A stretch of 64,000 nucleotides of DNA from the NCBI GenBank assembly GCA_973895155.1, contig OZ316898.1, positions 14,724,330-14,788,329 of the forward strand, in the 5' to 3' direction. Position numbers and translations under genes: made by a program. Below, piece by piece: positions 4,747-64,000 of this stretch. The notes under the pieces were generated by a model. The model was not told the DNA's origin, did no database searches, and saw nothing but the letters and a program-made list of their open reading frames with translations. The DNA comes from Marsupella aquatica (taxonomy: Eukaryota > Plantae > Marchantiophyta). Position 1 is the first letter of the stretch. Each line of letters begins with the position of its first letter.

Positions 4747-4780
4747 ATCACAGTATTCATTAAAACTGGAAATTTAAAAG
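4747..4780 (+). repeat. Left TIR of element S
   Basis: 22 of the first 25 nt match the reverse complement of the right end. Confidence 0.85.
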
Positions 4781-5201
4781 TCCAGATTGTGATCCTCAAA
4801 TTTACATTCTTGTCTCTAAAAAGTCCATTAATTTTGCTCCAAATAAACAATTTTTCAAGACTAAATATACACTCTTTTTGGTTTAAAATTACACTTTTGC
4901 ACTCCAAATTTGATTTTAATCAATTAATCATAATACAGAAATTATTAATATTAATTGTATTTGAAATTAAATAGATAAGTGACAAACATGTATCATTTGG
5001 TCAAAAACTCATGATTAAATTCAAAGTGAGATTAATCATCTCATTTATCATAACATATATTCAAGGTTGGCTAGCCATAATGTCGATCCTACTCCAATGG
5101 TCAAGCTAGTGTAAAGTCCAAAGTAGTTCTATGACCTGTGAAATAGAAAAATGATTGCATGACTCCAATCTTGTGTCCTACAATGTACAGAAACATAATG
5201 A

Positions 5202-6274
5202 TTAATCATCTAAATTTTCAAATTCTATGCCTCCATGAATATGTCTACATGACTGATTTGAACAAGTGAGTCGCTCTCCATTTGGGTCATATAGTCTGTC
5301 ACGAGTGCAAGTGTCTTTGGGATAACGGTTTTTAAACTTAGAGGTGAGATCCCTAGTCTTTAGAACTTCCCAGACAAATCGGCGAGGATTTTCTCTGAAG
5401 GGACCTGCATAAGACTCGCCCAAACAGTTGTTGACCACATCTTTCATATCATCTTCGGTCAGGTTCTCAAATGTAGGGTAGGATTGTACCATATCCCTCA
5501 CTTCCCAACATATCTCATCTCCAGTGACATCCAAGATGGTATACTCAATCTTGGAACGCCAAATCTTACTTCCCCACTTATGGGAAAGTAAATCATAGAT
5601 TGCAGCATTACTTTCACGGTCATCATTTATATTAACAAATGACCAAAGTGGATTGTTGACAGATATATATTGTCGGATGTCATAAGCCTTCCACAATTTT
5701 CTAAGGAATGGCCAAAGTATCTCTGGTAGAAAAGTGTCACTCTCGGCAATGTGTGAGAAGGGAGTTGGGAACAAACCACTATACTGTGGATTTGCAAAAG
5801 CCTTCACTGGAGAGTCATCAATAAGTAGAGTGTTTGTATCATCATACTTGTCTCCAAAATGACTCCACACCACACGCAAATCCTTCAACATAATATTTGC
5901 TTTCCCATCTGCTACGTCCGGTCTTTTTATGCCAGTATCAAAAGCATCTTCTTGTGTGAAAACAAATTTAAATTGCCTCCGCTCCTCTTCTTTGAAAATC
6001 AAATTCATCATTTCATTAGTTCTTGGCCTCCCCGCACAAGTCCACAATGCGACATCAAAACCTTTGAAAGCCACCTCCAAAAATTGGTGCAACCCTGGCC
6101 TTTCCACGTACATGAAATTGAATCCACCCCGTCTCCCCCAATGCACACCCCGCACAGTTGTTGTAGATCTTAACGGTCCCGAGCTTTTTGTTTTGATGCA
6201 ATCCCAACAAATTTTGTTCAGGTCCAAAATCAAGAGTTTTCTTCTTATATCAGAGTGCAATTTAGGAGTGAAAT
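5202..6274 (-). CDS. FCP1/NIF-family HAD phosphatase-like domain (probable last exon of the S cargo gene)
   Basis: KLLILDLNK, ERPGLHQFLE, FDVALWT, KDLRVVW and NTLLIDDSPVKAFANP are NIF/FCP1-homology motifs. The ORF lacks an ATG and follows a ttgcag acceptor. Confidence 0.85.
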
Positions 6275-7121
6275 CTGCAAAGATCCAAATGAATCAAAAT
6301 TATATCTAAAAGATATAAAAGAAGAACTTAGGGTCGAACCTGGATCGACCCAACCTAATGGGGAAAACAAACATATCATTTTTGAATGTCAAAGCATTTT
6401 GATATATCAATGTAGAAGTACCTTGCTCAAATGCTTTGTCTTGGACCAGGGTACCGCTTGCTGAAGGTAGACCAATAATATCCTTCGATGGAAGAGATGC
6501 TATGACAAAACTTTGGTCTGTCCATATATGATTTCCAAACATAATATTTTAGATTATTGTGAAAAATAGAATAACGAAACCATAATATTAACCTCCACTA
6601 CTAAATGACCCATATTCATCTATCATTTTATCACCTAGATCACTTTGGATATCAGAATTGACGCCAACAGGAAGCTGCTCCACCAACGTTGGCGGCGCAA
6701 ACACTGGACTCAATCTCAATTTGTCTATTATGTAATCAGGTTTGACCATTAACTTAGGCGCATCCTCCAACGTTTCTTTCAATCCAACTTTAGGTTCATT
6801 TCTCCAAATGAAATGACTTGCATGACGGACTGTCTTCATATATCCTGTTCTACCTATCTCAGATCCAGACTTTTGAGACAAGCGTAATATTATGGGGCTT
6901 CCGCTTGACATCCTTGTGAAGACCAATTTATTCCCTGATGAACAAAATTGAGGAGACTCGGAACAAGTTGAAGCACCTGCCTCTTCAGCTTCAACATTTG
7001 TTGTCTCTCCAAGTGGAAGGTTGTCTTCAATCGCTTCTGCAATACCAACTTGTAGGTCCGTGGTGGGTGTAGTGGCCCCAATATTCTGCCAACCTGCATC
7101 CAATGTGCACGATACCTGCGG

Positions 7122-8876
7122 TCACTCGGGATGCAATTTTGATACTTCAGGGTTGAGAGGATTTGAGGGAGGGTCGCTCTCAGGGTGACCCGACATCACT
7201 ATGTCGAGTTGAGGTAGCCCTTCAACACCGTAGGTAGTAATGCCAACCATTTCTGTTGCTCGAGCATCCCAATTTCTGCCAAAATCCTCCTCTACCATAG
7301 GACTTGAACCTCCATCATCATGCTGCAACTCACCATCCTCAAGGTCAACTCGCTGAGGGCCCGGTTGGGGGTTGTCCATAGGCCCGCAAAGAACACTTAG
7401 ATGAGCTCTCCTAGGACCATGTACTCCCATCCGCTCTTTCATAAGGGAGGGAATGCTGTTGCACAAAACCCTTGCATATGCTTGGGTGAAATGGTGTTCT
7501 TGCAAAGTGTCTGAATAGACAAAACAATCTCGGTATGCCAACAAGGCCACCTTCAAAACCTGCCCTCCTGAAAAAAAATCGAGGACAGTCTCCCCCTCAC
7601 CGGAAAAACATTCAATAATATTTTTGAGCATGTGTCGGGGCTTGGCATGTGGATTGACAAATCCTCCTCAACTTCCGACCATCTCAAACATTGGAGCTTG
7701 CCGCAATAAATCTGCCATATCAAATGCGGGAGACTGCTCCTCTGTCTCATTCTCTTTTCCCTTGCTTTTCTCTTGCTTGTCAGCCTTCACTTCAATATTG
7801 AAATCACAGTCAACATCGGGGTGAAAACTAAATTTTGAATTGAACTCTGGCTTAAACAATTGATTCCAATCAAAATTGTCTTCACCTGTAATTCCAGCAA
7901 AAATGACCTGCTCAATCGCTCCTGTAAAAATTAAGCCCTGCGGATTTGGGCGATCTTCCCGATCATAACTCCCGTATTCAACATGGATGGCCAAATGCTT
8001 TTCATGTCCTAATTTCCTTAGGGCACTTAAGATGTTGGCTGGAAGTGGCCCTGGATGAGTAGTCATGACAACTACAATGGTTGTATTCCTTGGCAACTCC
8101 ACAATATATTGGAGCAATACAAAAATTTCCGAATCTGTCCATTCATGTTGTCGTGCCCTACTAAAATCAACAATTGCAAGTGGACACATTGGCGTCGCCT
8201 CTTCCAATAACTCTGGCGTGGTTGTCTTCATTAGATTCTCACTGAAGAACGTCAAGAAAGGCTCTGTTCGTGTGCGCCCAACTCCACCAAATTGTTTGCA
8301 GTACAACCCGTCTAATCTCACCATTAGACTTTGAGGGAAAGCCTCCTTCACAATGTTCTTCCTTAATAAACTGCTAAGGTAGACCTCCCCAGCTGCTCTT
8401 CGCAATTTTGTCAGCTCAAGTTGAGATCCCAAGGCCGGCATGATGTTGACCACCGAAGCCCACGATGTCCCCCCAGGAAACTTCTCCTTGTGCTTCTCAA
8501 CAAAGTACTCAACAATGACTTGCTTCAATTTAGTCATTACCTTGATGGTATGAGCCATATCTGGCATTGACACCAGATCCATCTTGTTGGAGGCATCTTT
8601 CTTGAGAAGTGCTTTCTTCTCATAAACTACGGTCAATATATCAATGATATCCTTAGAACTGATCTCCCCTTCAAAACATCTAAAAAGAGTTGGCGTGACC
8701 AGCTTTAGTGGCCGCGGCCCACCATACTCTCCTGCCCCGCCAGGGAGCTTCCCTGCCAACCAATCCCAACAAACAGTTTGCCATAAATGGAAAAGCTTAT
8801 CCTCAGCAAAGAGCAACCAAAAAATGGCTTTCAAGCTCGACTTTCCCATTGTTATCTTTGCGAGGGCAAACCAATC
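7122..8876 (-). CDS. Exon with an N6-adenine/N4-cytosine (beta-class) methyltransferase-like domain, catalytic motif degenerate
   Basis: Reading through the TGA at 7668 gives VNPHAKPRHMLKNIIECFSGEGETVLDFFSGG..VALLAYR, matching motifs X and I (HPxxKP...GDxVLDxFxGSG). The expected DPPY position appears as LAIVDFSR. Confidence 0.7.
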
Positions 8877-9088
8877 CTGCATTTACATTCATCCACCAAA
8901 AAACATGTTAGATGTTTAAACTTAGAAACTTCAACTTCTCTGCCTCGCTCCTAGAGCGAGGCGAAGAAAATGACAAAGCCATATGAAAATGGTTGGGGCA
9001 ATCATTGTATTCATCATTCAATTTCATTTGGGTCGCTCTAAGAGCGAGGCAAAATTAAACTACAGTTCCAACTAATGAAAATGTTTAC

Positions 9089-10105
9089 CTGGTATTTCTG
9101 GTTGTCTGTACTTTGGTTTGTTCCAATTCCTGGACGCGGTGGTTTCCCACATTCATCAAATTGCCTTCTCGCATGAACAACTGTCTCTAGAAAACAAGAC
9201 TTAAACTGCATGGTCTGATTTACTGCATTTGAAAGGCTCGAGTGCTCGACCAAAATTGCCCTTGGAGTGAGGTCTGATAAGATCCTCGCTTTCCGATATT
9301 GGAGTTTGCTAGCAAGATCAGTTAGCTTGGCATCCTTGTCTGCCCACCCTTGAATCCATTGTGCCGCCTTTGCGGAATGTTGCCCACTGATTGCAAGAAA
9401 TTGTATCTCTTGCTTCTTAACACCAAACAAAAATTGCTTCCGATCGCGTGCGGTATTGTCAAAATGTAACAACTGCTTAGTGCGCTCTAGAAATGGAATC
9501 AAATCTGCAACATGTGGTTCCTGGCCAGGGTTTTTCATCATTGATTTTTCTATCTCTAAGGCATGAGCCTGGTTGAACATCCGATACACAAAAACTGCAG
9601 TAGGCGGAAGAATACTTTTAACCGGGATTTCAAAAACCTCCCTGATTCCAAAAGTGTAGTATTGCTCGATGTTCCGCAAAGCTTTCTGCCCCTCCAATAC
9701 ATCTCGTTCCTCTGGTGCATCTGTTGGGCATGTATCATCCTCCGGATCCAAGACCAACCTTGCTTTTGACGCTGACACGGGCTTTGATTTTCCAATCTTG
9801 GCCTTCTTCTTGGGCTTCTTGTCGGAGTCCTTATCTTTCTTCTTCAACGCCGCCTTTTTTCCTCTAGTACTTCCTTCACTCCTTGGCTCTCTTTGTTTTC
9901 TCTTCTTTTGTGTTTCAGCCGACGTCATTTCTTTGGCCTTCATCTTCATCTTCCCCTTACCTCGATGCTTTTCTTCCTTCTTCTTTTGAGTTGAAATCCA
10001 CTTCATGCAAGCATCTTCGTCAAACTCATCAGAGAAAATAAAACTCTTATCAATTGCTTTCTCATATGAAAAGCGTGTTGTTTCAATCATCCTCTGGACA
10101 ACCAT
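9089..10105 (-). CDS. Exon with a lysine-rich (NLS-like) region and a ParB/Sulfiredoxin-like domain
   Basis: FEIPVKSI...RMFNQAHALEIEKSMMKN...FLAISGQHSAKA fits the ParB-N pattern (I.G.HR..A, here with R replaced by S). Confidence 0.6.
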
Positions 10106-10710
10106 GTGTTAGGAAGATCTATAAGGTCCGGATGATCATGCATGTACCGCTTCACAGAGAGGAATCCAAAGACAACATCAACCCCACTCAATTTGAATCT
10201 TCCATGCCTCTCAAGAACATCCTCTGCAGTGAACCCATCTGGAAGAAATCCCATTGAACAAATACTAGCCTCCGAGCGTGCTATCCACTCCACGTTGATA
10301 ATTGACGAGTACATCTTGATTGGCAAGTAAAGTCTCATCCACTGAGATCTTTCTCTGGATTCAATAATGATTGTAACATTGCGGTTATCACTGCAATTTA
10401 CAAGGACCACAGGGCCCAACGCAACTATCTTCTTGTCATTCATTGTCTCAGCAGTGATTGCCTTGATACAAATCATCGACAAGTCATTCTCCATGATCCC
10501 TACTTCAAGTGCCCACGAAAATCCTGCCTTATCTTGTCCAGGGAAGATAAAGTCCTTGACATCCTCGGCCATAATATTTAACTCTGGGGATCCAAGTTGT
10601 TCTCCTGGAAAAACAAATTGAAACGACAAACATTAAAGCAAGAGATCTTCTGTGTTGCCTCGCCCCTAGAGCGAGCTGGAGACAAGGTCTGCATCAACAA
10701 ACATGTGGGT

Positions 10711-11970
10711 TGGGTCACTCCTGGAGCGACCCTAGGAAAACTTAAATCAAGGTCCAACCAACAACAAATTTGGATCGCTCCTGGAGCGACCCTAGGAAAA
10801 CTTAAATCAAGGTCCAACCGACAACAAAGTTGGGTCGCTCCTGGAGCGACCCTAGGAAAACTTAAATCAAGGTCCAACCAACAACAAATTTGGGTCGCTC
10901 CTGGAGCGACCCTAGGAAAACTTAAATCAAGGTCCAACCGACAACAAAGTTGGGTCGCTCCTGGAGCGACCCTTGGAAAACTTAAATCAAGGTCCAACCA
11001 ACAACAAATTTGTGTTGTTCCTGGAGCGACCCTAGGAAAACTTAAATCAAGGTCCAACCGACAACAAAGTTGGGTCGCTCCTGGAGCGACCCTAGGAAAA
11101 CTTAAATCAAGGTCCAACCAACAACAAATTTGGATCGCTCCTGGAGCGACCCTAGGAAAACTTAAATCAAGGTCCAACCGACAACAAAGTTGGGTCGCTC
11201 CTGGAGCAACCCTAGGAAAACTTAAATCAAGGTCCAACCAACAACAAATTTGGGTCGCTCCTGGAGCGACCCTAGGAAAACTTAAATCAAGGTCCAACCG
11301 ACAACAAAGTTGGGTCACTCCTGGAGCGACCCTTGGAAAACTTAAATCAAGGTCCAACCAACAACAAATTTGTGTCGCTCCTGGAGCGACCCTAGGAAAA
11401 CTTAAATCAAGGTCCAACCGACAACAAAGTTGGGTCGCTCCTGGAGCGACCCTTGGAAAACTTAAATCAAGGTCCAACCAACAACAAATTTGTGTCGCTC
11501 CTGGAGCGACCCTAGGAAAACTTAAATCAAGGTCCAACCGACAACAAAGTTGGGTCGCTCCTGGAGCGACCCTAGGAAAACTTAAATCAAGGTCCAACCA
11601 ACAACAAATTTGGGTCGCTCCTGGAGCGACCCTAGGAAAACTTAAATCAAGGTCCAACCGACAACAAAGTTGGGTCGCTCCTGGAGCGACCCTTGGAAAA
11701 CTTAAATCAAGGTCCAACCAACAACAAATTTGTGTCGCTCCTGGAGCGACCCTAGGAAAACTTAAATCAAGGTCCAACCGACAACAAAGTTGGGTCGCTC
11801 CTGGAGCGACCCTAGGAAAACTTAAATCAAGGTCCAACCAACAACAAAGTTGGGTCGCTCCTGGAGCGACCCTAGGAAAACTTAAATCAACGTCCAACCA
11901 ACAACAAAGTTGGGTCGCTCCTGGAGCGACCCTAGGAAAACTTAAATCAATGTCCAACCAATAACAACGA
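10711..11970. repeat. 60-bp tandem array, 21 units, with alternating A/B variants (120-bp higher order); each unit holds the palindrome GGGTCGCTC-CTG-GAGCGACCC
   Basis: Exact 60-nt periodicity is visible line by line. CCAACCAACAACAAATT alternates with CCAACCGACAACAAAGT. The array lies in predicted intron 1 (10605-12022). Confidence 0.97.
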
Positions 11971-13276
11971 CAAATCTTAGGCAAGATAGGGTCGCTCTTA
12001 GAGCGACCCTTCAAAGACTAACTTGCATCAATTGTTGAATCATACTTACGTGGAACTGTGATATGAAATCCCCTTGAGGCGGCCAAAGCGGATTCCACCG
12101 ACATCTTTAGTAAAGTGTCTTGAGAATCATACTCAAAGATTTTACTAGAATCAAAGTTCAGGGACTGCCCAGAACTAGAAGTGCTAGTAGAATCATCAGA
12201 ACTAGAGGAAGTGGCCATTGAAAAATGCCTCACAAACGTTTAGATGACACGTGGCAGCCTAGTATACAATAACGCCTATAGCTAGACCACACCACGGAGC
12301 GAGGCTACAGAGCAAGGAAAAAAATCTACTATGAGCAAGGAAAAAAATCTACTATGAGCAAGGCAAAATCAACAGAGCGAGGCAAGAAAATCTACTATGA
12401 GCGAGGCAAGAGGGAGGAGGGAAACCAGGGCAGCCGGGCAAGAAGACAATGAAGGAGGAGATGGATGCAAGAAGACAATGAGGCAAATGAGGTAATGTCT
12501 TTGCCTTTTGCCTTCCTATACCCTCACTGCCACGGCCGATCCTACGCCACGGCCGATCGTACGCGACCTTACGCAACCAAGCCACTTGCTCCCTTCCACG
12601 TGCCTGTGAACTCGCAACCCTCATAATGACCTAGCTGTACGGGTATCCATAGATTTTGAAAAATGATGCACGGTCGTACGGGTGTCCACAGAATGCCGAT
12701 CAGAGTAATCAGACTTTCGGCCTCTCGATGTTGTGAACCCCTTCAGGACAAACTTGGCTAAAGCTTGCTCACAAATGGTATAAAGCTCTACAGTTCCAAT
12801 CATTTCTCTCTTTTGTATGGCGCGTGCGTTTCTGGTCATTGCTCACTCTCGGTCTCGCCCTTCGGCCCTTGTCTATCTTGCTTCTGTTCGGTGACTGATT
12901 CGACTGACTTGGACATTTATGGTTACAAGAGTTCGTGCAAGGAAAGTCTTGTTTCAAGTATATTGCATTAGTTTTGGTGTCCTTGGTTGGCGACACGTCT
13001 TCTATAGTCCTTAAGAGAGGTATTACTTCATCTACCATTCTCTTAATTTCTTCTCTATGATATCCACCAAATATTTGGCCCTAGCTTTATCTTAATATAT
13101 GGACCTAACTAAGCCCTAGATAATGTAGGGTTCCTAACGACACACTCGTCTACCCACACGTCTACACACTTCAATGGTCTAATTCAGCTTAATCATTCCC
13201 CTGATTTATTCATTTCCATATTTTCTCTTTTCCTTCACAATTCTTGCTTCTCCAGGATTGTGCTCGTCTTTTCTTG

Positions 13277-13715
13277 CTCTCCCCTTGCCTCGCTCCAAGA
13301 GCGTCATGCCCTTGCCTCGCTCCAAGAGCGTCATACACTTACCTTTCATCAGGAGCATCCTGCCCTTTCTTTTCTCCAAGGGCATCCGCTCTCCATTGCC
13401 TCGCCATCAGAGCGTCCCTCAACCGCCTCACCCCTAGAGCGACCCTCCATCGCCTAGCCCCTAGAGCGACCCTCATTCACCTTGCCCCTAGAGCGTCTCT
13501 CCATCGCCTCGCCCCTAGAGCGACCCTCATTCACCTCGCCCCTAGAGCGTCCCTCCATCACCTCGCCTCTAGAGCGACCCTCCATTGCCTCGCCCCTAGA
13601 GCGACCCTCCATCGCCTCGCCCCTAGAGCGACCCTCCATCGCCTCGCCCCTAGAGCATCCCTCAATCGCCTCGCCCCTAGAGCGTCGCAACCTTGCCTCG
13701 CTCCAAGAGCATCCC
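13277..13715. repeat. 27-bp minisatellite (~16 degenerate units) carrying TCGCCCCTAGAGCGA, upstream of the transposase
   Basis: Unit ccatcgcctcgcccctagagcgaccct; it translates as repeated LHRLAPRAT / PSIASPLER. Confidence 0.92.
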
Positions 13716-13893
13716 TGACCTTAGAATCCTGTTGTGTAAAGCCAATACACATAAACTACCAAATTTTTTTTTCCTATAAATAGAATTCAAATGTTTAGAT
13801 CTAATATTGTAATATCTAGAGTAGTGCTTATCAGTATGCACATCAGCTGAACAATTTTTAAATGTTTTTGGATGCAGAGATCCTTTCGCTACC

Positions 13894-16800
13894 ATGAGTA
13901 AATTTATGCGAGGGGATGAAGTTTCATTGATAATTGATGGTTTTGAAGTGGCAATTGGGACCATCCAAAAGGTTGATCCCAAAGACACTATACACAATAT
14001 TTGTCTTGGGAAAAATCGAATTGGGGTCCTTATCGAGAGGTGTCTTGAAACATCTTGTCCACTACCATTTCCATCCAAAACATCATCGAGCCTAGGTGAT
14101 GCAGTTGACTCGTGTGTGATCTGGGATTCTTCCTTGGCATATTTGAGGTCTTCAACATTGCCGAAAAGAACCGCTGTGGATGGTGTTCCTACTCCAGTGG
14201 ACGGGGATGAAGGATGTTCCGAAATGGATGTTGGTGGTAAAGGAGGCAACCTTGCTGAAGGAGAGGAGGTTGAGATGTTCATTTTAGATGAACTTGTATC
14301 AAAAGGAGTTGTCTTCAATACCAATCCAATGGACACTTGTCATAGTGAACGACTCGGTGTTGGCCGTGTCAGTATACAAATATCAGAGGTTGTTCAGGGA
14401 AATAGAAAATTACCGTATCCGCATCCTGGAGCTGACACAGTGCAAGAGGCAATGCAGACTTGGGTAATGTGGGATGTTGCTGATGTTTCAAGAAAAGGCT
14501 CTATTCGAGGTTCTGGCATGTTTGTTGGTGCAAACCCGGGTGCAAACCTGTTTAAGGATCTTCCATTGAAAGATTTTACAATGCGTTCCAACTGGATGGC
14601 AGAGGAAGTTGACTTGTATGATGTTTCTCATTGTCGTAAGGTTGCGACAGGGGTTATCACAGTTCCTTTTGAAGCAGGTGCTGTTGATGATGAACTTCTT
14701 GGTCCAGAGCATGTGGGTGTAGCTGTTGTGAATATCAACGATCCCGCATTATTTCCAAATATCCGTGCTGGTACTCCAGGTTTGGTGAGGTGGGAAATCA
14801 AATCTTTGTTGTTGATTTCATCTCAAATGTTTCTCGGGGATATCCTTGAGAAAGGTTCACATGTGTGGATAGAATCGGGTCGAAATGAGAGCGACCCGGA
14901 TTTGGATGGTGATGGGAAACCTCCAAAAAGACCTTATAATTTCATTAGAAGGACCAAAGTGGATCTGGAGGAGAAAAAAAAAACATTTGCAATCAAGGGC
15001 GCTTTTGAAAATCACCGATGAGTCCATTGATTCCATCCAAAGAGAAGGTTGTTGCAGGTTAAAGTGTTGCTTGAACATGCCAAGAGAGGACTTGGAGGCA
15101 ATGAGGAGGGAATTTCATGGAATGTCAAGTGACAACAAAACAAGTCATATCTTCAATCTTTTTGGGTGTAGAGAAGACCAAGTCAAGAGAAAAGGATTTT
15201 TTGTTCTAAAGGGACGTGTGGTTTGTAAGGATGCGTTCATAAAAATGCATGGGTTTAGTACGGCAAAGTATTATGATTACAAAAATCAGTACGAAGCTGG
15301 GTGCACAATTGGTTTCCATGGAAATCAAGGGCAACATAAGACACGATCAAGCACCTTGCATGCTCGTGCATTGTTGGAGTCCATTTTAATCCAAAATGGA
15401 GAACCAATGCCACATCTTCCCTATGGTGGGTCCAACGGCACCGATACTGTTGAATATCGACTCCCATCATGTTTCACTAAGAAGGAGATTTTTCAAGAGG
15501 TATTTGCAAAGATGGAATTGGACGGCTATGCTAAGGTTACTGAAGTTACCATGTACAACATCTGGAAAAATTCTTTTGATAATTTTGACTTTCACAAGGG
15601 CAGTGCATTTGCCAAGTGCACATTTTGCACTGAGTTCAAAGATCAATTGATGCGAGAGAAGAGAAAAAAAGAGCGTGCACAGATTGAAGAGAAAAGAGCA
15701 CGACATCTTCGTGAACAAATGTCAAGGAGATATGTTTACTATGCTCATAGGGTTCTTGCAAAGAAGGATCCTCAAAACTATCTTTGCATTATTCATGATA
15801 AGATGGACCAAGCCAAGACTTGGATCCCCAGATTGGTCCCCACTCCAAAATCTCTCTCTGGTAGTGGTCAACCTCTGCCCATTGCCCTTACTGGGATGTT
15901 AACCCATGGAAGGGATCCAGGAGTGTATGCACACTTTAGTTTGACTGGCCTTTGGCCTGGAGATGCAGACTTCACTGTGACATCTTTGGCCAAATGCCTT
16001 CGAGATTTGGAGGATTACACTGGAGACAAAACGGGAGACATGCTTGAAGCTTTCAATTGGAACGCAACTAGGCCAATATTTCAGTCTCTTTTGGACTTTG
16101 AAGCATTTCAAGCGGGTTACTTGGAACCCAAAAATGTTTCAATTCTCAAGTTTCAAGGCCTTGATGACGGTCAGGAGAGCCAAAAAACCAGCACAACAGA
16201 TGCTGGTTCTAGAGTTGATCCTGAGACTACGAGCTCTTTCAAGCCCTTACCAAGGCACCTAACATTGCAGATGGACAATTCAGGAAAAGATAATAAAAAT
16301 CAATATGTGATGGCATTTTGCAGCGAGCTTGTTAGCAGGGGGTGTTTGAAACTATGCAAATGTGATTCCTCATGGTTGGCCACACCCATGAGGATGTGGA
16401 TGCACTATTTTCTCAAGTATCCAAACAGGTCAGGTACAAAGAGGTTGCTACCCTCCTTGCGTTGATGGCTGAGGTTTGGGAGTGTGAAAGCATCCATCCC
16501 GTACCACGATTGATTCAGGAGGTTGCATCTTACAAGCACTACTTGAAGGCTTTCCAAGTGAAAGAGATTGAAGGTCACTCAAAACCAGTGGCATTTCTAT
16601 TCTCCATGAGGGATAATGTGCCAGTGTATCAATATAAAGCACATGTCAAACAACCTTGGCTTCCAGCAACAGGGAGGTCAATTTGGAGAACTGATCTCAT
16701 CACAAACACGCTCATTTTACCGGAGGGCCAACCATTTGCAAAACCTATATCGGGGGAGGTACAAAAGAAAGCCGAGGAAATCATCCCATTCCTTAATCGT

Positions 16801-18180: not shown

Positions 18181-18213
18181 CTTTATAATTCCACTTTTAA
18201 TGAATATAGTGAT
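18181..18213 (-). repeat. Right TIR of element S
   Basis: ctttataattccacttttaatgaatatagtgat, followed by the TSD TAAG. Confidence 0.85.
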
Positions 18214-18217
18214 TAAG

Positions 18218-21695: not shown

Positions 21696-21699
21696 TACG

Positions 21700-21764
21700 T
21701 GGAGATTCTCGCTCCTTTAGGCTTTCCTCCTCTAAGGTTCTCTCCTCAATTGTAACTTGAAATG
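21700..21764 (-). pseudogene. Continuation of the element B integrase on the left flank of C
   Basis: Joining across the AAATG TSD reads QLEIPTF-QVTIEERTLEEESLKER, collinear with C integrase EFEVPTIRILTREREGAEESVASR. Confidence 0.8.
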
Positions 21765-53522: not shown

Positions 53523-56500
53523 TCATAAGCCATTCAAGTTCTGCCTCTCCAGCACAAGCCTGACTTCGCCTAAAGTCAAAATAGGTTGGCTACAAAGAGT
53601 CAACTCCTCAATCTCAAGTTTGAAAACATTTATGTACACCCAGTATAGATGTTTGCAAGGCATGTACGACTTGCCACGCGAATGTTGGAGGAAGAAGTCT
53701 TCACAAGAGCAAGCGGGGAAGATATAGATTTGGACGAAGTATGTGCTTGGTGATCGATGGTTCTCATGGGTTTGAATTCGAAATTGCTTTCCAAAAGCAT
53801 TTCCGGTCTGAACATTCCATTCCCCATCCAAACTCATCACTTCTTGTCGTGCAGACCCCATTCACTTCGTGTGACCCACAGTGAGATTAGACCGAGGCCT
53901 TGAGTTCCTCCCATTCCGACTACCAAGTCGGAGATTCGGCTCCAAAAACCTTATTGTTTCTGGGAACACGTTAACATTTATCCTGAGGTCAAAAGCAGAT
54001 GGCGTAGATCGACTCAATCCTGTTGTTCGCTCTAAGACAAGTCCTTGCTCTTCCAGGAATGTAATTTCAAAAGGAGATAGGCTCGTACCCTTCTTAACAG
54101 GCAAAATGTCAGGAAAAGGAGGAAGCTTCTGAACACCACGACGCGGATGACTCTTGTAACACGCTTGGTTCGGGCAAAACCAAATCATTTCGGAGATGGG
54201 TTCGCCCTTGAAGAGACGATGGCCCTTCACGACAATTCCGACAACACCTTGAGACGAATGGAAGCCAACCTTCTTGATACGATTTCGACACTCATCGCGA
54301 TCCGAACTCCCATTCAGTGTACCATTGCATCGCGGACCTGCTCCATACTTTGATGTCCGTCGCAACTGCCACTGCCCCGGAGGGACATCCTTCTCTAGCA
54401 CAATGGTGCGTGGAAGTTGATTCTGAAGTGCTGCTGGGGCACTGAGCGGAGGTTTTGAGGATCTTGTTGTTCGGGTTGTTTGAGGAGTATAGTCCAGTGA
54501 ATCAGTATCACTCTCTGATGTGACCATACCTGAGAGATTCACCGCCTTTGTGATAGGATGATCAGAACTTGAGGGAATAGAAGAAAAGTCAGTTCTGTTC
54601 AGGTTCTTCCTTTTCAAACCACGAGTATTTGGTGTGGTTATTAGAACGGTGTCATGCCGATGGGAATCTTGTGGAGAGACAGTCCCAGTTGCATGTCCCT
54701 TCCTCTTCATTGACTTTGTCATTATATCTCCATTCAGGGGAGTACTTCTTTCCAAATCGAATTCTGCTGCGTTAGATAGAAGCATATTAGTCGCTTCTTC
54801 AAACAATCTTGGCGAACCTGCTTGATTGGCGGAACGGAACGCCAATTCCCATATAGTTGGCCCCTTCCCCCGGTTCAAGCCTTTACGGTATGCACTGTAT
54901 CCGGCAACTTGAGACAGAGCACGGTTTTGGTCAACTTCGCAAGCTTCATAAAGACCGACCTTTTTCTTTGTAGCCGAGGCTTTCATGGATGCATGCCTTG
55001 ATTCTGACCCTGTACAGTTGGGGATCAAGGCACCTTCCTCAGTGCTTTTGCTCTGCCATACGAAAATGTCAACCGTAAGTAGTATTCTATTACCAGCGCC
55101 CGGCGCTGGCAACATAAATATGTAGAACAGGCCTGAAATACAATTTCAATGTTTAATACTGAATTCTAACTACATATTGGCTTCAATTTCTTGTACTACT
55201 TGTTTTGACGTGTATGGAGAAAATAACCAGCGCCTAGCGCTAATATGAAGTTGATGAACATTACAGTCTAGATAGATGGATGCCTTACCACTCGAATAAA
55301 ATTGCCCCACTGGCGCCAGCGAACAACCCACCAAGATATCCAGCTTTGCAGCATCTTCAACTTTCCGGGGACACAGTTTCCTGATTGCCACCACACAACA
55401 ATCTCTCGGGACACCCGGTATGCTGCCACAAATGATGGAGCATTTCTCAGTTTCTCCCAAAGTCTCTGATGCTCCGATTGACATTCTTCCAGTACTCCTT
55501 CCTTGGAATGACGATGAAAAGATTGATAAAAGTGAAATGCATCAGAGCGCTCCCTCTCCGGGTCCGGGTGTCCACCAAAAAAAACATTTCGCACTGCATT
55601 CCATCCAGCTTGTGCATTGTCGGCCATAAATCCTTGGATGACAACCTCCTGAAGTTCATGTTCTTTGCAAACCTCAATCATCACTCTCCATGCCTTTTCA
55701 AAAGACTCAGTGTCTTCACCTTTCAACTCGCATGTGAAAATTGTACACAGTGCACGGAAATTGTGGTCGTAGACGTGTGCGCTGAAAGTAAACCAATCCG
55801 TGGTGACACGCTGCATCACATCGAAACTTACCCAGGCTCCTTCGAGTCTTCCACCCGGTTGCATCTGCCTCAAAAGATCCACACCAGAACCGTGACCTTT
55901 CACGGTCATTTTAAAGATGTGAGGCCTATCGTTCTGACATCCCTGACTTGGAAGCAAATACCTCTGGAGAAATGACACATCAATCCTCCTCTGCATTTTC
56001 GAGAGAAAATCTAATTCACCCCAACCTGTTTGGTCTATCCTAACGCTCCGACAAAGAGATGCAAACTTCTGCGGAGTGGAAAGGACCATCAGAGACTTCC
56101 ATATTTCAGTTTCTTCGATATCGACCATGTCATCAACATGTTCGCAGAGAGATTTCACTAAGGACCCTGTAGCAGAATTCAAGATCCCTGCCGGTTTTGA
56201 CAGAGAATTGGCTTCATGTTTTTTTTAATTAGATCCTCAGCTATCTTCTCCGCACTCCTACAGAAGGTTTTTCTACCTGGATGGTTGTGCTCACCTATAT
56301 GAATTGCCAGGCGGGACATATGACTACATATTTCCGCATCAAGTAATACTTGGGGGTACATGTAAAACAAACGGGCAGGGCAGTACTTCACACAAAAAGG
56401 AATCTGTTCGCAGTAATGACAAACAACACCTCCCTCTTCGATGAAAGATCCCACAGCATACTGACCATTGAGCTTTGGAGTACCCTGCCATGCCTTAGCA

Positions 56501-57321
56501 TTTGCCTTCTTCTTCCTTTGGAAATAGTCGCAGGACTTGTTCCTGCATTCAATGAATCCCGTACAGGTAACCTTCCCAAACTGCCAAAGGTTTTTAGGAT
56601 GAACAGTTGCAGTTGTTGGAAATATGCGTGTCCAAATGTAATAATCTTTGGCACGATCCATGTCCCTAAGCCTAGAGCCTTTAGAGAGTATCTTATCAAT
56701 GGGCGGCAACTCAAACACGACGTTACCATTGTACTTAGTTGGCAGACAGGACACTTGTTCATGCCTGAAATCACCCGCTGATATGAACCGTGACAACTCA
56801 CTATGACCAGTTGATTTGAGTAACGTATCCATCGCACTGCGCCGGTACACGACCTCCAACTGCTTAGAGCTTCCCGGAGTCTCAACTTTCACGACAGCAG
56901 GGAGCGGGATTTTCTTCTTCGACGGTGGACTTAGAGTATGATCCTCACTTGAAGAAATCTCAACCACATCACATGGAACCGGCGGGAAACTGGACAGTCT
57001 TGCATGCTGTCTTAAACGAACCGAGTACGAGATCCCTGCGTAGAGATGCCAAAACCGTTCACCGTCATCGACATTGAACGTTGTAGCATCCTCGATATCA
57101 TCAATGGATTTGAGCTCTCGAACAATGGCCTCAATGTCATTCATCTTCAAATCAAATCTCTTGCAAAGATACCTCTCCCGGACCTGCTTGTACATATCTT
57201 CCATGGGGACGGGGATAGTCACAATATCTTCAGAACCGAATCGAGAAAGAACGATAGACCGAGACATGGTGAAAAAAAACAAAAACCGAGGGCTATAGCG
57301 TTTGAAAGAAGAAAAGTTCAT
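53523..57321 (-). pseudogene. MULE-like transposase: Zn-binding GCM/WRKY-like N-terminal domain, DDE core, C-terminal SWIM finger; one intron (55053-55288), a frameshift at ~56200 and a stop at 53862
   Basis: CTGFIECRNKSC...CHYC...CPAR...HIGEHNHP; WVSFD..., GFMADNAQAGWNAVRNVF...FHFYQS; PACSCEDF...PCKHLYWV. The intron is phase 0 and preserves the frame. Confidence 0.75.
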
Positions 57322-58231
57322 GGTATTGTTCAGCTTATATATGTCGAACCTGGGAATTTGACGTTAACCAATCCGTTTGTATACGACATAAAACATAGAC
57401 GATGGAGGATCCGTTGGCACCATAAATGATTTTTGTCGTTTTTTCCCCGATAAGTCCGGATGTCAGACACAAACATATTGCTAAAAAGATCACCAACCTT
57501 ACTTAAACAGACCATAAGATATGACAAGGTATTGTCAAATTTTAGTAGCGCCTGGCGCTAACTAAAATACGCCACTAAAAATGTGTGTGAAATCTCGACA
57601 TTCCAAACTAGCGCCCGGCGCTAGTATAGAATAAATTCCCTGAAAATGAACATTATGACCACATACCAGGTGGTAATTGGGAATAAATGGTGCCTTCAAA
57701 GGATGGTTTTGATGGATTATGGATGATAAATGAACATTTATACTAGCGCCGGGCGCTAGTATTACATTTGAGAAATATTTCTCCGTAAACGATGTATTGA
57801 AGGACACTTTAATAAAATATGGGGGTGGAAAGGCCAAAATTTATATCATAGCTCCTTCAAAAAAGACCTCTAAATTTCTTCCAGTTTATACTAGCGCCGG
57901 GCGCTATTATAAGCATACTCTAAATTGTTCACCTTGATGGTCATCATTAATGCTAGCGCCCGGCGCTAGTATTGATATGATGTTAGGAAATGTCTTTAAC
58001 GGTAACATTCAACGGTAACTTATGACTTTCGTGTGTGTTACGCATCTTCTACCGTTTGATTTTGGTAATTAAACCTTCCGTATACAGACGTTGGAAACCG
58101 CCAAACATCAGAGCTAATGGCTTTCCTCTAGGTTATGTCATCCTCCCGCTAGAATATATTACACGTTCAGAGATGATTATAGTTCCATAATTTCATTGTA
58201 CGATAGTTCGTACGCTTCTAGAAGGAAGACG

Positions 58232-61200
58232 ATGGAGGTATTCCCCTCTTCTTCCAGAGGGTATAGTGCGGTTCCTGACCAGGAGTGAGCTTATTCTGAA
58301 TCTTCGCAGTCTTCGTTTACTGGTTCAGTCTATACACGTCGTGTAACTCGTTCCTCAAAGTTGTTCCCGCTCACTTCTGTCAGCGGTGTTTTGGGTCCAA
58401 ATCCTTTGCAAAGAAAGATGGACAACGTAGACACAATTGCGATCCAGGATGTTGCGGATTGCGCGCTTGCTGAGACTGATCTCATTTCGAAACATGTCAT
58501 GTCTTTTGGAAAGGATTCTCGTGGATTGGACAAGGAGCCGCCTCGAATCCCTCTGTGTCGATTGGTTCACATGGAGGTGGTTCATACTCTGCAGAAAGAC
58601 AGCTCTTCCATCGAGAAGCTGAAAGACTCTTTTCATAGTATGGGTTACAACTCTTCGATAGGGATGCGTTTCTATCTGCAGCCAACGGATGAGAACAGAA
58701 TTGTTCTGACCTGTACCCAGGACATTCGTGATTCATGGGATCCAATATGGCAATTGGAGAACGAGAAGTTTGAGGCTGAATGCGAGGCTGACCCGGATTT
58801 TCTCGTCTTGAAGGATAAGATGTTCGCTGTATTCGATGGAAATCACAGGCTGTACTCCTGGACGCTTGTAACAGAGGAGAACCCGGACAATCCAAAATAT
58901 CATCCTCGTGTGCTCTATACAATATTTAAAGGAGACAAGGGATCTCTCATTGAAATTGAGGCAGCTATGCACACCGTGAATCAGTAAATTCTCATGATTT
59001 CTAGTTCTTTCCTTAAATCTTGCGAGTGTTGTATTTACTAGCGCTCGGCACTACTTATACATGAATTGTTTTTCATTGACTCTTACTCTCAACGTTTGTT
59101 CGTGTAGGCTTGGCCAAGCAGTTGTAGAGCCTTCCTGGATCCTGGATGCGGACAGAATCAAACGAATTCTGGCGCATGACCTTGAATATTACAGTAAACT
59201 GATTGACCCGGGTAATTTCAAGAAGTTTGAAAGCATTCGGCTGAAAACTCAGAAGGGGTCATGGTATACGAAGAAGATGCCACAAGAAGCACTTGTTTAT
59301 ATTCTTTGTGAGAATAAGATAAAGTCGTACTCGCATCAATTCAAACTCGACATGGAGGCAGCGGAGGCTCAAGGGAGTCCATGGTCGGCGGACGAGATTT
59401 CAAAACGGCATGCGGCCATGATGAAAGATGCAACCAAAGATTGGGCAGTGAAGTCTTCAAAAATTACGCCCTTATTAAGTCCTGAATTTGAAGATTTCCT
59501 CAGTACATGTGCAGAAATGTATGTTGTCACAGAGAGAAACAAGAGAGAGAAGAAGCCTGACACCGTTGTATGTACGATGGACCGCGCATGATTGTTCACC
59601 GCTGTTTCCGCTCTAGACCCAAAGTTACGAAGCACTTTACTTGTGGCACATTGCAATCCTGAGCTGCGGAGACAGTTTTTTCACCCAGCAAGTGTTAACG
59701 ATGATCCAGTCAAACAGTGGTGCCACACTTGGATCACTTGGAATAGTGTGGAGGGAATTGTTGCTGGCATGTTACATTCATGTCTACGTGAAGTTGAGCA
59801 AACCATGCCCGCGAATAGATTGGAAGAGTGGAATTGTAGTTCGTTTGATGATCTAGTTCAGTTTGTTACAAATGAATTCAAGAGATTTGGTGATTCCGTG
59901 AAGAATAAGTTCTTTCACACTATGTGGCCTTCAAAGTACCCTGACAAAGAAGATTACACCCAGAGAAACCAGAAGCGAGCGAAGAGGTTTGTGTATAGGT
60001 TCTACATGCACATGGAGGTAACCAAACCTGATTACTTCTGGGCATATCCTGCAGCTTTTATGAAGTGGATTTCAATAAGTGAAGATGATGCCTTGGCTGA
60101 TTTGTACTCTATGTACCCCACGGAGGGCATATTTCCTCCGAGACCAATGACAGAATGGGAGAGAACTCACTGCCCCTGGTAGATACAGATAGATGGGATT
60201 CTCCTTTTGATCAAAGGGAAAAAGATGCCTTCCATAAGCTTTCAAAGTCTCAGATGCCAGCAAAACTTGTGTCCGACATGAAGCAGGGTCTACTTGACGA
60301 TGTAGACAAGTCTGCCACAAACTTGCAAACTATCTGTGAAACAACTGTTGTGCATGTGGACCGGAGTCGCAAACCTCGCGCGAAAGCCAAAGCGGAGCTA
60401 GCAGCACCGAGCGAGTCTACTAAGAAGAGTAAGTATTGCTATCCATGATTTTTCCAGCGCCAGGCGCTGGCAAGAAATATTTTGTTGAGGGTATTCTCTT
60501 TCTTGGTTATTAGGCTTCGGTTGCGACTTAAGTGAATTGCATTTGGTTAGCGCCAGGCGCTAGCTTCTTTCAATACTTTAAAAGTACTTATTCTAACTAC
60601 GACCTGGTTATATTTTAGGAGGGAGGAAGTCTAATACGGTGGGAACAGGAGATATGAAAAAGGATGCTACACCTGAAGTTTCCGAGGCAAACACGGGAGC
60701 TCGATCGGACCCCATTACTCCAGTCGACAAAGGGAAGGTTATAGTTCCTATCGACGCCACGAGTACCAGGAAGAAACGAAAGAGAGTTGTCGAAGGTGGA
60801 CAATCTTTAAGGGAGAGTGTTATAGCTTCTGGTTTCCAACGTGAAGTTGGAAACTTCAAAACAACTGTGTCTCGCCATTGCATGGTTGAGACAAGCCTTT
60901 CTGAATTTTTTGACTCGACGTTCAACAAGGAGGAGAAGCCCGAGTGGGTTAGTGATGTGGCAAAATGGGGAAAAGACCTCGTTAAGTTGGGATTTAAAGA
61001 GAAGGGAGTTGTTCGGGGGGGAAAAGTAAGATCGTTTGGAGTGGATGCCGGCTTCATTTACCTACCGACCGGGTTCAAACCATCTATCATTGATAAGAAG
61101 GTTCCTAAATGGAACATTCCGGATCACTCAATGGCTAGATCTTTTTTCAAATCCATGGATCCATTGATGGGTTCCTTGTAATTCTACACAATGGGGAGTA

Positions 61201-61885
61201 TGATCCCATGTCGCAAGTCATTGCTGCCTGTCAGGAGTCAAGGAAATTTCAGTGTATATGCTCGCATAATGTTGTGATGTCTGACCCGATGTATGTGGCA
61301 AAGACAGACCGAGAGATGTTTACCCTCAAGCTCGACATATTTGGCCGAATTAATGGGAAATGTAAAATTCCCAAAGACCCAAAATTTTGGCCGCTGTCCA
61401 TCAGTGAGGACCCTTCGGTTACCAATTTGATCGGACTCTCTTCGCTCAAATCAGATCCATTCCCGCAAATGGAGTTTGCTGGAAATGCTCGTCTGTCTGT
61501 GGGTTTTATGCAATCTATTATAGAGCTTGTCACATGGCCTCGTGATATTTTTATGGATTGGACTGCTGGGGCTGGAAGCTCTTACATTGCTGGTGACTTC
61601 TCTGGACGATTTGTACTCGGGATAGAACACCGGAAAGAATTTATTGAAACCGCTTCAAAGGTTTTCATGGATTTGTTGTCTCCCAAAGAGATTGTAGTGT
61701 TACCTCCACCTGTTCCTACTGCCGACAGAAAAAAGAGAGATAAGCTTCGGTCGGTTCTCAATTTTGATTCTGATGATGAATCGAGTGAAGGTGGAGAGGA
61801 ACAAGGTACAAGAAACTCCGAGGAGGAAAAGGGAGAGCGTCGTGCAGCTGCAGATGAAACCGATAGTGATGACTCTTCCGAGTAA
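58232..61885 (+). pseudogene. Spliced cargo gene of M: ParB-like + beta-class DNA methyltransferase-like, disrupted
   Basis: ParB: RIPLCRL...IEKLKDSF...GY...FAVFDGNHRLYSW. MTase-like: GFMQSIIELVTWPRDIFMDWTAGAGSSYIAGDFSGRFVLGIE. Frame-preserving introns 58984-59107 and 60429-60618; lesions near 59590, 60180 and 61180. The start is uncertain. Confidence 0.72.
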
Positions 61886-62579
61886 TGTTCATAAACTCGT
61901 AAGCTTCTTTCTCCATTCCCGTCAATTCATAACATTTCTTTTGTTGTTTTGGGGAAAGGCGCCTTACAAAATGGACTTTGTTATATCAGGTCAGAGTGGA
62001 ATGCAAGGAGACGATTCAAACTGCGGAGGAAGATCGCGAGACACAACTTAGAAACACCGGAAAAACCGTTTGTTCTTCCCTCCTATGCAGAGAAAGCCGC
62101 AAGGAAAGCAGAAAGTGCAAGGACACTTTGCTGGGAAAACAAAGGTCTTCGGTTACGAAGGGGTGTTGACCGAAAGTTCATTAAACATCCTTATGTTGAT
62201 GACTTCTCCCGCAGCCAGTACGTAGATGATGAGGCTGTGTCCACGGACAGATCCCAGAGTACAGATTCTGGTTCCGACTCACAATCTTCGGAACCGTGAG
62301 AAGTAGTGGGTAGTTGAGGCTAAATCTTTTAGCAGCGCCCGGCGCTTGTAACATCTATATTATTTCCCTCTGCTGAGGGTCCTTTTAAATTGTTGATTTC
62401 TCTCTACTTGTTGATTACTTTTGACTTCTGTTCTTTACAAGCGCCTGGCGCTCGCCAAATGGAATCTCTAAATGGCCGTTTAGTCTTTGTTGTTTCCTGT
62501 CAACGGTCATCGTCATTGGATACCAACTGCCATTTGGATTGTGTTCTTTAGTCAGTCTTCGGAAAGCCGTTGGGGACCA

Positions 62580-62940
62580 TAGTTTTGGGACGATGATTCC
62601 ATAGTTTAGGGACCGGGCGGAAGGGACGACTATAGTTTCAGTTTAGGTTTGTTCGGGACGACGAGAGTTGGGGACGTCGATAGTTGAGGCCGATGATAGT
62701 TTCGGGAGGACGATAGAACGGGACGATAGAACGGGACGATAGAACGGGAGGGGAGACTTTGTTTCGGGAGGATGATAGAACGTGACGATAGAACAGGACG
62801 ATAGTTCGTTTGGGAAGACTTTGTTTCGGGAAGACGATAGAACGGGACGTTAGAGTAGGGCGATAGAACGGGACGATACCTGTTACCAAGGCGAAGATAG
62901 TTTTGGGAGGCAATAGAACGGGGTGATGATAGTTTGATGG
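62580..62940 (+). repeat. Degenerate GGGACGATAGAAC (13-bp) repeat tract
   Basis: Repeated gacgatagaacgg / gacgatagttt units. Confidence 0.8.
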
Positions 62941-63084
62941 TCATTTCGGAACGGTAGTGTACGCGGACCTTTATCTGGCGTCTTAGTCTTCGCAGACCTT
63001 TCTTTGACCTTTGTCGGCTATAGCACTCGCGGACGACGTTCTTACGGGAGGAGAGGTTATATATTAGATCGGGATCTTTGAAAC

Positions 63085-63546
63085 ATGGCGAGTCAGTATG
63101 AGCCAATGGATTGGGAGGCAGCTTTTCGTCCTTCTCGTGTGCGTCTGGAAGAGAGCCATTTCAGCTCTTTTGAATCGCGGATGGAGACTGAAGAAACTGA
63201 AACTTCCACTTTTCGGAACTGTCATGCTCTCCCGTATGATGAGGCTATTAGTCCTGGAGAGAACAACATCCCTTGGATTGTCGATTCCCCTGCGCCTCCG
63301 TTCTCTAGTCGGTTTTTGTCTCACCCGGGAGTTCTTGTTGATGGGGTACTCCCAATCGATCGAAGAGGACAAGAAATGTTTGGGCGAGTTGATTTTAAGG
63401 ACAGTAATATTCCTAATGAACATTTTACGAGGGCTGTTCGTCGAGGACCTTCAGAGGGATACGTTCGTTTGCGTGGTCTCGGCTTCAAGAAAGATCGGTG
63501 GAGAGAAGCAGCAGGAGTGGATGATGATTGCAACTCGGAAAGCTAG
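63085..63546 (+). CDS. Possible 153-aa hypothetical protein within M
   Basis: ATG-initiated ORF with ordinary composition, lying between palindrome-bearing non-coding tracts; no recognised motif. Confidence 0.3.
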   Translation: MASQYEPMDWEAAFRPSRVRLEESHFSSFESRMETEETETSTFRNCHALPYDEAISPGENNIPWIVDSPAPPFSSRFLSHPGVLVDGVLPIDRRGQEMFGRVDFKDSNIPNEHFTRAVRRGPSEGYVRLRGLGFKKDRWREAAGVDDDCNSES

Positions 63547-64000
63547 ATGGAAATTTTGTTTTGCTGATCGCTTTAAGCTAGCGCCAGGCGCTGCTAAAGT
63601 TTTCCGGATTTTGTGGCATTGAAGTCGACCTCAGCTCTGGCGTTAGGGTTTTCCTGGTTGTCTACTATTTAGGTTTTGGCTAGCGCCGGGCGCTATTGAA
63701 ACGACAACGGATTTTGTGGGAGGGAATGGATCTTGACTATGTTGTCTGGGTTTGGACGCATCTTGTCTCCAAGAAACGACTAGTTTTCTAGTTAGTTTTT
63801 GGCTAGCGCCAAGCGCTGTTCATGTATTAGTCGAAAACCTCCGACGGTGTCGACCGTGACTTCATGGATGGGATTTTTAGGCCAGATTGTTGATGTTGAT
63901 AACTGCATTTTGTATCACTTAAGCCGAGCGTGTTTTCTATTTTGCGATAATATATGCGAATATTTTTTCCGGCCTTTCTTTTCTACTTGTATTTGTCTTG

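Follow-up and report, generated by a model that had tools for sequence, protein, structure and literature searches.

ParB-like/methyltransferase-like accessory genes and element-specific palindromes in two unrelated DNA transposons of the liverwort Marsupella aquatica

Why should two DNA transposons that look unrelated each carry a gene for a ParB-like/methyltransferase-like protein, together with a palindrome of its own? The question is raised by a 64,000-nucleotide stretch of the Marsupella aquatica genome (contig OZ316898.1, positions 14,724,330 to 14,788,329; hereafter the window, numbered from its first letter), which holds two such elements, here called S and M. The cargo genes and the palindromes are real features of both, the two are unrelated cut-and-paste transposons, and the cargo product belongs to a kind of accessory protein that has previously been reported from transposons of algae. 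The original prediction, read from the letters of the window, held that the cargo protein recognises the palindrome of its own element and alters or protects local chromatin or methylation, and it called this a candidate new system. That wording was overstated: the hypothesis is essentially in print for algae, two papers on their transposons having put forward the same idea in 2025 (PMC12477816; bioRxiv 10.1101/2025.02.11.637652). In the literature that we searched there was no paper on such a module in land plants.

In element S (4747-18213) the cargo gene, long and multi-exon, runs on the minus strand (10617-5205), divergent from a plus-strand transposase that is spread over several overlapping open reading frames (ORFs; 13894-17627). 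Its first block (9086-10617, minus strand) encodes, after an N-terminal domain and a basic linker, a domain of predicted ParB/sulfiredoxin (Srx) fold with the motif FLAISGQHS. The next (7125-8882, minus strand) covers a middle region and a methyltransferase-like domain, with AIVDFSR as the equivalent of motif IV and NPHAKP...VLDFFSGG as motif X/I, and a C-terminal domain follows (7121-6591, minus strand). In element M, which extends from about 52282 to beyond position 64000, the multi-exon cargo gene lies on the plus strand (58343-61882), divergent from a DDE-type transposase on the minus strand (57363-53526). Cargo exon 1 (58343-58982, plus strand) carries the predicted ParB/Srx-fold domain, with the motif FAVFDGNHR. 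An intron of the form GTAAAT...TGTAG (58983-59108, plus strand) separates it from exon 2 (59109-60179, plus strand), a helical middle region that aligns to residues 326-658 of the Riccia protein P0172. The methyltransferase-like domain then comes in two plus-strand blocks, an upstream one (60597-61130) with the motif IV equivalent FIYLPTG and a downstream one (61139-61882) with beta5-7 and the motif X/I sequence IFMDWTAGAGS. The presence of introns is supported by this example and by the ORFs of relatives, which stop at identical exon borders, and the divergent, intron-containing cargo gene that had been predicted for each element was borne out. The spliced cargo gene models of S and M were searched exon by exon; block 1 of S found 15 homologues, and exon 1 of M has 213 representative homologues.

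Each element is also loaded with its own palindrome. That of S, TCGCTCNNNGAGCGA, has the form GTCGCTC-N3-GAGCGAC and gives 29 matches at no more than one mismatch against 0.10 expected, all of them within 8945-13631. That of M, AGCGCCNGGCGCT, has the form TAGCGCC-N-GGCGCTA and gives 15 matches against 0.06 expected, all within 53404-63817. Within the window neither palindrome was found outside its own element, in agreement with the element-specific, non-coding palindromes of the original prediction. In S, two tandem arrays occupy the region between the divergent genes: one of 60-bp units directly upstream of the cargo gene (10589-12088), each unit containing GGGTCGCTCCTGGAGCGACCC, and one of 27-bp units directly upstream of the transposase (13260-13768), made of degenerate copies of the palindrome. 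Two further S palindromes (8945-8959 and 9033-9047) stand in the intron that follows the ParB exon. The M copies are dispersed rather than tandem, with five in the interval that separates the two divergent genes (57547-57967), two in a cargo intron (60456-60561), five downstream of the cargo gene (62334-63817) and three on the transposase side (53404, 55095 and 55229).

Such arrays could be functionless satellites that grew by slippage and lie beside the cargo only incidentally. The majority of the S copies are units of the two tandem arrays (60-bp and 27-bp) and are therefore not independent events, so that one expansion would explain most of the S count. The behaviour of the palindromes in related elements bears on this possibility. 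We compared nine elements in total: S and M, L001 and L010 from Calypogeia fissa (S-like), L003 and L011 from Riccia sorocarpa (M-like), and L012, L013 and L014. By protein homology, the S and M genes have their nearest relatives in these two liverworts and in a fern.

A high-copy palindrome is present in all nine elements and at equivalent positions, namely between the genes at the centre, in the intron that follows the ParB exon, and downstream or in subterminal regions. L001 and L010 are complete S-like elements, colinear with S in transposase, ParB/methyltransferase cargo and NIF-like phosphatase domain. They share one motif, CTCGAGA-N3-TCTCGAG, which in L001 (CTCGAGANNNTCTCGAG) gives 14 matches against 0.58 expected, and which forms a 35-bp-spaced array between the genes with one copy in the intron after the ParB exon (L001 9726, L010 11665). 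The same intron, which holds the S copies at 8945 and 9033, carries palindromes in L014 as well (2604-2873), where CTCGAG-N-CTCGAG occurs three times; the L014 ORFs, of 572 and 771 amino acids (aa), are intact. In L003 and L011 the transposase stands head-to-head with cargo proteins of 1191-1207 aa. L003 has two palindromes, CCGGCGANNNTCGCCGG in 11 copies and CCAGCGGNNNCCGCTGG in 18, and L011 has 27 copies of CCGGCG-N5-CGCCGG, with about zero expected in each case. The Riccia motifs (CCGGCGA-N3-TCGCCGG, CCAGCGG-N3-CCGCTGG and CCGGCGG-N3-CCGCCGG) are concentrated in three places, the subterminal region on the left, the centre and the subterminal region on the right, and one copy lies within an intron. 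L013, which is nearer to M, has the M half-site without its spacer (TAGCGCC-GGCGCTA, AGCGCCGGCGCT, 11-12 copies), and L012 has TGGTCGG-N2-CCGACCA in 9-10 copies. The head-to-head layout itself was found in all five relatives whose retrieved sequence covers the transposase (L001, L010, L003, L011 and L013).

Taken as a whole, the palindromes measure 13-17 bp, with half-sites of 6-7 bp spaced by 0-5 bp and a CpG in every half-site. They are amplified in the shared promoter region and in introns, and in the M family also in both subterminal regions. Growth by slippage alone is difficult to reconcile with copies that are dispersed and not tandem in M and its relatives, with a palindrome family in every one of the nine elements, or with a single intron that has a palindrome in four S-family elements although its sequence differs between lineages. 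We consider the satellite explanation very improbable. The relatives instead provide comparative evidence of another kind: the positions of the palindromes are kept while their sequence or spacing changes between lineages, a pattern that fits an element-encoded, sequence-specific binder.

We propose that the accessory protein is this binder, and that it recognises its own palindromes, marks the element and controls expression, chromatin or the pairing of the ends; our confidence in this proposal is evenly divided. Mechanistically, the protein would occupy the palindromes in dimeric form, in the manner of ParB at parS and KorB at its operators, and this binding would mark the element as self. 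Once bound, it would regulate the shared promoter, the expression of the element or the local chromatin. Alternatively, it might bridge the subterminal clusters and so join the ends for transposition.

The fold of the ParB-like domain was addressed with AlphaFold (AF2) models built from alignments of natural homologues (16 sequences for S, 40 for M). The predicted local distance difference test score (pLDDT) was 76 for the S model and 83 for the M model, with residues 60-232 of the latter above 90. Compared with the PDB by Foldseek, the S model found Noc as its best match (7ol9, E 1.6e-3, probability 1.0), followed by ParB and sulfiredoxin, and the M model found ParB (6sdk, E 0.048, probability 0.99), followed by Noc, KorB and Srx. 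The head of both lists consists almost entirely of ParB, Noc, KorB, PadC and sulfiredoxin, with probabilities of 0.99-1.0. Against viral models (BFVD), the M model matched phage 'ParB/Sulfiredoxin' proteins and a mycobacteriophage 'DNA methylase'. On these models, whose E-values are modest, we accept a ParB/Srx fold in both cargo proteins. The predicted succession of a ParB-like and a beta-class methyltransferase-like domain was thus upheld, by Foldseek of the AF2 models together with the hhalign comparisons described below. At the level of single tools the outcome was mixed: structure comparison recovered the ParB fold, Pfam ParBc did not, and Pfam N6_N4_Mtase fell just below its threshold.

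Several observations weigh against the accessory protein as a palindrome binder. The ParB assignment came from the structure route and not from sequence searches: Pfam ParBc has no match in the S or M cargo at E<=5, phmmer with single sequences and family profiles found no ParB among the PDB sequences, and every Foldseek E-value is above 1e-3. No explicit helix-turn-helix was demonstrated in the ParB-like part of the cargo, and the cytidine triphosphate (CTP)-binding box of ParB is altered, to SGQHS in S and to DGNHR in M. In the M family this box, WDGNHR, is nearly invariant and retains its arginine; in the S family GQHS is invariant and lacks it. In addition, both cargo copies in the window are pseudogenes. 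Each has a single TGA within a frame that is otherwise open, located in the methyltransferase-like block of S at 7668-7670 (where P0004 reads GDSGG and S reads GS*GG) and in exon 2 of M at 59589-59591. Because relatives carry sense codons there, these TGAs look like nonsense mutations of decaying copies; in the S cargo the frame is also shifted near 10100 when compared with P0006. Finally, the palindrome binder could be the transposase or a host factor instead, and, since every element sampled carries the cargo, the palindromes could be a trait of the transposon families and not of the cargo.

In its full form, the last of these objections takes the palindromes as transposase or host-factor sites, or as ordinary subterminal or promoter repeats, to which the cargo is unrelated. 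The sites of transposases or accessory proteins in cut-and-paste elements are usually subterminal, and the M-family palindromes do form a subterminal cluster on each side besides the central one. Covariation cannot separate the transposase from the cargo as the binder, because palindrome, transposase and cargo are inherited together. The S-family palindromes, however, centre on the promoter region and one conserved intron and not on the ends, and the transposase of M could use other sites, the direct subterminal repeats CCTGTTACCAG and GACGATAGAACGG, which are distinct from the palindromes. Moreover, two unrelated transposases would each need a preference for CpG palindromes of about 13-17 bp, while the ParB-like cargo is the component that both elements share. 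We regard this explanation as unlikely, if deserving of real weight, and retain the accessory protein as the proposed binder.

What the second domain of this protein would contribute depends on how closely it resembles a working methyltransferase. Pfam N6_N4_Mtase (PF01555, gathering threshold 26.7 bits) was the best or only informative match in seven proteins from both families, always over profile positions of about 163-220 and always below threshold (S exon, 24.8 bits; M exon, 18.1; P0004, 24.7; P0172, 23.7; P0170, 26.2; P0173, 24.8; L014, 25.9). In the PDB, the M block matched DpnA (5hek, E 6e-4) and the S block M.RsrI. Compared by hhalign with seven phage beta-class methylases, the S family scored 96.2% (E 2e-9) and the M family 96.6% in local alignment (E 5e-10), rising to 97.9% in global alignment (E 2e-12, 219 columns). 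Because of these profile results, the half that would bind S-adenosylmethionine (SAM) is taken as homologous to beta-class N6/N4 methylases in both families, and the whole domain as homologous to them in the M family. As regards a possible permuted motif order, with IV-VIII before X-I, the global alignment of the M family sets DLPT on D[PIL]PY. The global alignment of the S family is unreliable in its N-terminal half, and there DFSR...W was placed on DPPY...WD by eye only. The SAM-binding motif I (FxGxG), after a motif X of HPTQKP type, is present in both families. A tblastn search of phage genomes with the Riccia and S-family proteins matched almost only annotated DNA methylases, within a motif X/I stretch of about 60 aa (E 0.03-1), and a word-based protein search with the methyltransferase exon of M had no matches. 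UniRef names the Riccia sorocarpa proteins P0172, P0170 and P0173 'Trimethylguanosine synthase'; this is probably an automatic mislabel through the SAM-binding motif, since Pfam finds only a sub-threshold N6_N4_Mtase stretch in them.

The canonical motif IV, (D/N/S)PP(Y/F/W), is lacking in every member seen of both families. Six S-family members (S, P0001-P0004 and L014) read [VA]DF[SG][RQ] at this place. M-family members read DLPT, DMPS or ALPT, and the window copy reads YLPT, with Tyr at the Asp position. A second candidate for motif IV of M, SDPMY in the downstream block (61139-61882), was rejected: in the alignment with the Riccia homologues it falls after beta5, and the true equivalent is the upstream FIYLPTG. 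As the replacements are kept within each family, the domain appears constrained but non-canonical. As motif IV is non-canonical family-wide, N6-methyladenine (6mA) or N4-methylcytosine (4mC) activity of the canonical kind is doubtful for the cargo, and so is the earlier suggestion that the cargo alters methylation.

That suggestion, in the version shared by the original prediction and the algal papers, invokes an active N6-adenine/N4-cytosine methyltransferase that is targeted to the palindromes by the ParB domain and whose mark blocks host silencing by 5-methylcytosine. It can appeal to the conserved SAM-binding half, homologous to phage DNA methylases, and to an M family that is globally alignable to beta-class enzymes. 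It can also appeal to the use of 4mC at CG by liverworts, with a prokaryote-like writer (bioRxiv 10.1101/2021.02.12.428880), CG being present in every palindrome half-site. The absence of the motif IV signature from all members seen argues in the opposite direction, as does the S-family catalytic half, which has no confident alignment to real methylases. The liverwort comparison also weighs against it. The Marchantia enzymes MpDN4MT1a/b, prokaryote-type 4mC methyltransferases acting at CG sites, retain TSPPY (bioRxiv 10.1101/2021.02.12.428880). Unlike the S and M cargo, they are host genes with this motif intact and with no reported ParB domain. We find an active, palindrome-targeted methyltransferase improbable, and direct 6mA/4mC methylation less likely than a role in binding or scaffolding; the domain would act as a SAM-binding, DNA-binding or scaffolding module rather than as a writer. 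As modelled and aligned here, the cargo protein is shown to combine a predicted ParB/Srx-fold domain, a helical region and a methyltransferase domain of putative beta-class derivation in which the SAM half is kept. That this domain is probably not a canonical DNA amino-methyltransferase changes which experiment would be informative.

Did S and M obtain this module from one another? Their transposases look non-homologous, as predicted, since tblastx between the elements finds nothing at E<=0.01. Their cargo proteins also show no similarity by tblastx, blastp or profile-profile comparison; hhalign between the two families gives 0.2% for the ParB alignments and 0.25-0.6% for the methyltransferase alignments, and the methyltransferase half of either family resembles phage enzymes much more closely than it does its counterpart. 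What the two have in common is architecture only, as could be expected if both descend from one ancient source, or if each captured the common prokaryotic ParB-methylase fusion independently. Because the cargo proteins have no detectable similarity, a recent exchange between S and M is unsupported, and the claim that the module had moved between transposon superfamilies finds no support here.

The closest published counterpart is Sola1-1_Ec32 of Ectocarpus, in which a gene for a 1104-aa ParB-like and N4C/N6A-methylase protein lies on the strand opposite the transposase; the authors suggested that this protein binds the transposon that encodes it and modifies it (Dinatale et al. 2025, PMC12477816). 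Likened by description, S matches this giant Sola1 element of a brown alga in layout and in its 4-bp target-site duplication (TSD). It differs from it in the land-plant host, in the non-canonical catalytic motif and in the NIF-like phosphatase domain of the S family; S also has palindromes, while PMC12477816 reports none for Sola1-1_Ec32. In red algae, Plavaka elements carry PAG2, a PF01555 methylase with a SET domain, and PAG3, a ParB-like protein with a 2-oxoglutarate (2OG) oxygenase domain (Petroll et al. 2025, bioRxiv 10.1101/2025.02.11.637652). According to the same Bostrychia genome paper, tandem inverted-repeat arrays adjoin PAG3, and PAG-type genes move among Plavaka, Mutator, Zisupton and Fanzor elements (bioRxiv 10.1101/2025.02.11.637652). 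Like these algal accessory proteins, the S and M cargo resides inside a DNA transposon and is encoded apart from the transposase; unlike PAG2 and PAG3, which are two proteins with SET and 2OG-oxygenase partners, it is one protein without those partners.

Among prokaryotic systems, the cargo shares its ParB/Srx fold with ParB-parS, Noc and KorB-OB, whose palindromic sites of 13-16 bp often occur several per replicon and in promoters, and it shares with phage ParB-methylase fusions the order of a ParB domain followed by a beta-class methylase. It departs from bacterial and phage ParB in having no ParBc sequence match and a changed GERR CTP-binding box, and from the ParB-methylases of bacteria and phages in its non-canonical catalytic loop, eukaryotic introns and transposon setting. 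The algal authors name VANC as the only known analogue of their accessory genes; in their account, the VANC system of Arabidopsis VANDAL elements pairs an accessory protein with short motifs, peculiar to each element, that have multiplied in its non-coding DNA (bioRxiv 10.1101/2025.02.11.637652). S, M and their relatives likewise have element-specific motifs amplified in non-coding DNA. The motifs of VANC are not known to be palindromic, and neither a ParB nor a methylase domain is known in the protein.

Self-recognising factors encoded by transposons are rare. VANC of Arabidopsis, the only one that has been characterised experimentally, illustrates how mobile DNA escapes epigenetic control. 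With the present elements, the ParB-like/methylase accessory class known from algae comes to include liverworts and, judging from protein homology, a fern, and it is placed in a second, SWIM-type transposon family. One may go further and suppose that two unrelated superfamilies of land-plant transposons independently fixed a ParB-type clamp joined to a dead methyltransferase domain (in S, probably also to an altered CTD-phosphatase-like domain), which reads a fast-evolving private CpG palindrome and shields or licenses the element without any DNA mark. This is a tentative reading that we think unlikely to hold as a whole. With chromosome-scale assemblies of Riccia and Calypogeia and with intact ORFs such as those of L014, the binding hypothesis is directly testable.

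The DNA transposon S is complete and interrupts a Ty3 retrotransposon copy. It is bounded by 32-nt terminal inverted repeats (TIRs; 4747-4778 and 18182-18213, 84% complementary) and by a perfect 4-bp TSD, TAAG (4743-4746 and 18214-18217). The TIR ATCAnAGTATTCATTAAAA is common to S and its Calypogeia relative L001, whose TSD, CATA, is also of 4 bp. Sola elements produce 4-bp TSDs, and we label S as Sola-type because of its TSD and the published Sola1 precedent, on which this putative assignment rests. The only Pfam match of the S transposase is DUF7869 (E 2.4e-15 and 8.4e-17), and the protein is colinear with the transposases of L001 and L010.

S-family cargo proteins (10102-10617 in the window, and P0005-P0016) have at their N-terminus a conserved domain (GFxYV...PxTW; about 170 aa) for which Pfam has no match, and the lysine-rich linker after it resembles a nuclear-localisation region. 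At the other end, a NIF/FCP-like phosphatase domain (6293-5205, minus strand; Pfam NIF, E 4e-16) reads LDLNK in place of the catalytic DxDxT, and the same LDLNK and an equal arrangement are found in L001 (13129-13713) and L010 (15653-16303). Because the domain has no start codon of its own, it is probably joined to the cargo by splicing, as its C-terminal part. Given its altered catalytic motif, it may be a second pseudo-enzyme of the S family.

Element M lies in a second Ty3 family, whose homology ceases at about 52281. Its left end is therefore approximate, its left terminus could not be located using the Riccia TIRs, and its right end lies past the window. The transposase ends in a C-terminal CxC...CxH SWIM-like finger (53526-53861), and is homologous to those of L003, L011 and L013. 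M had been described as a MULE/SWIM element. The SWIM-like finger was found, with a weak Pfam SWIM match (E 0.035) under the cut-off. The Pfam MULE domain gave no match at E<=1 in the transposase pieces of M, L011 and L013, and KDZ-type Pfam domains were not found in the M-family transposases. Two direct repeats accompany the palindromes of M: CCTGTTACCAG, on both sides of the element (52848-52921 and 62879), and a 13-bp tandem unit, GACGATAGAACGG, with 9 matches in the right part (62709-62921). Both are possible transposase sites. The M-like elements of Riccia measure about 15 kb; L011 occupies 1100-16020, and L003 has its left end near 2362. Their TIRs, of about 60 bp, begin with GGGGG, and L011 has the TSD CTTGATCC, of 8 (possibly 9) bp, MULE elements being characterised by long TIRs and TSDs of 9-11 bp.

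The remainder of the window consists of Ty3 elements. The copy that hosts S (1-4746 and 18214-19285, minus strand) is cleanly split by the 13.5-kb element, with Ty3 homology continuous across the insertion. Further on lies a tandem Ty3 array (21765-47376) arranged as LTR-internal-LTR-internal-LTR (LTR, long terminal repeat), with a period of 10.7 kb and a copy identity of 99.8-99.9%. The 'LTR' of this array, of about 4.1 kb, contains a 618-aa ORF (22920-24776, 33663-35519 and 44406-46262) for which a Pfam search gave no convincing match, and the internal part is a single gag-pol ORF of 2132 aa. The second Ty3 family (47378-52281, minus strand) is broken near 52282 by M. Between 48268 and 50644 its pol matches are contiguous in the protein (residue 1690) but 2.4 kb apart in the DNA, which suggests a further nested insertion.

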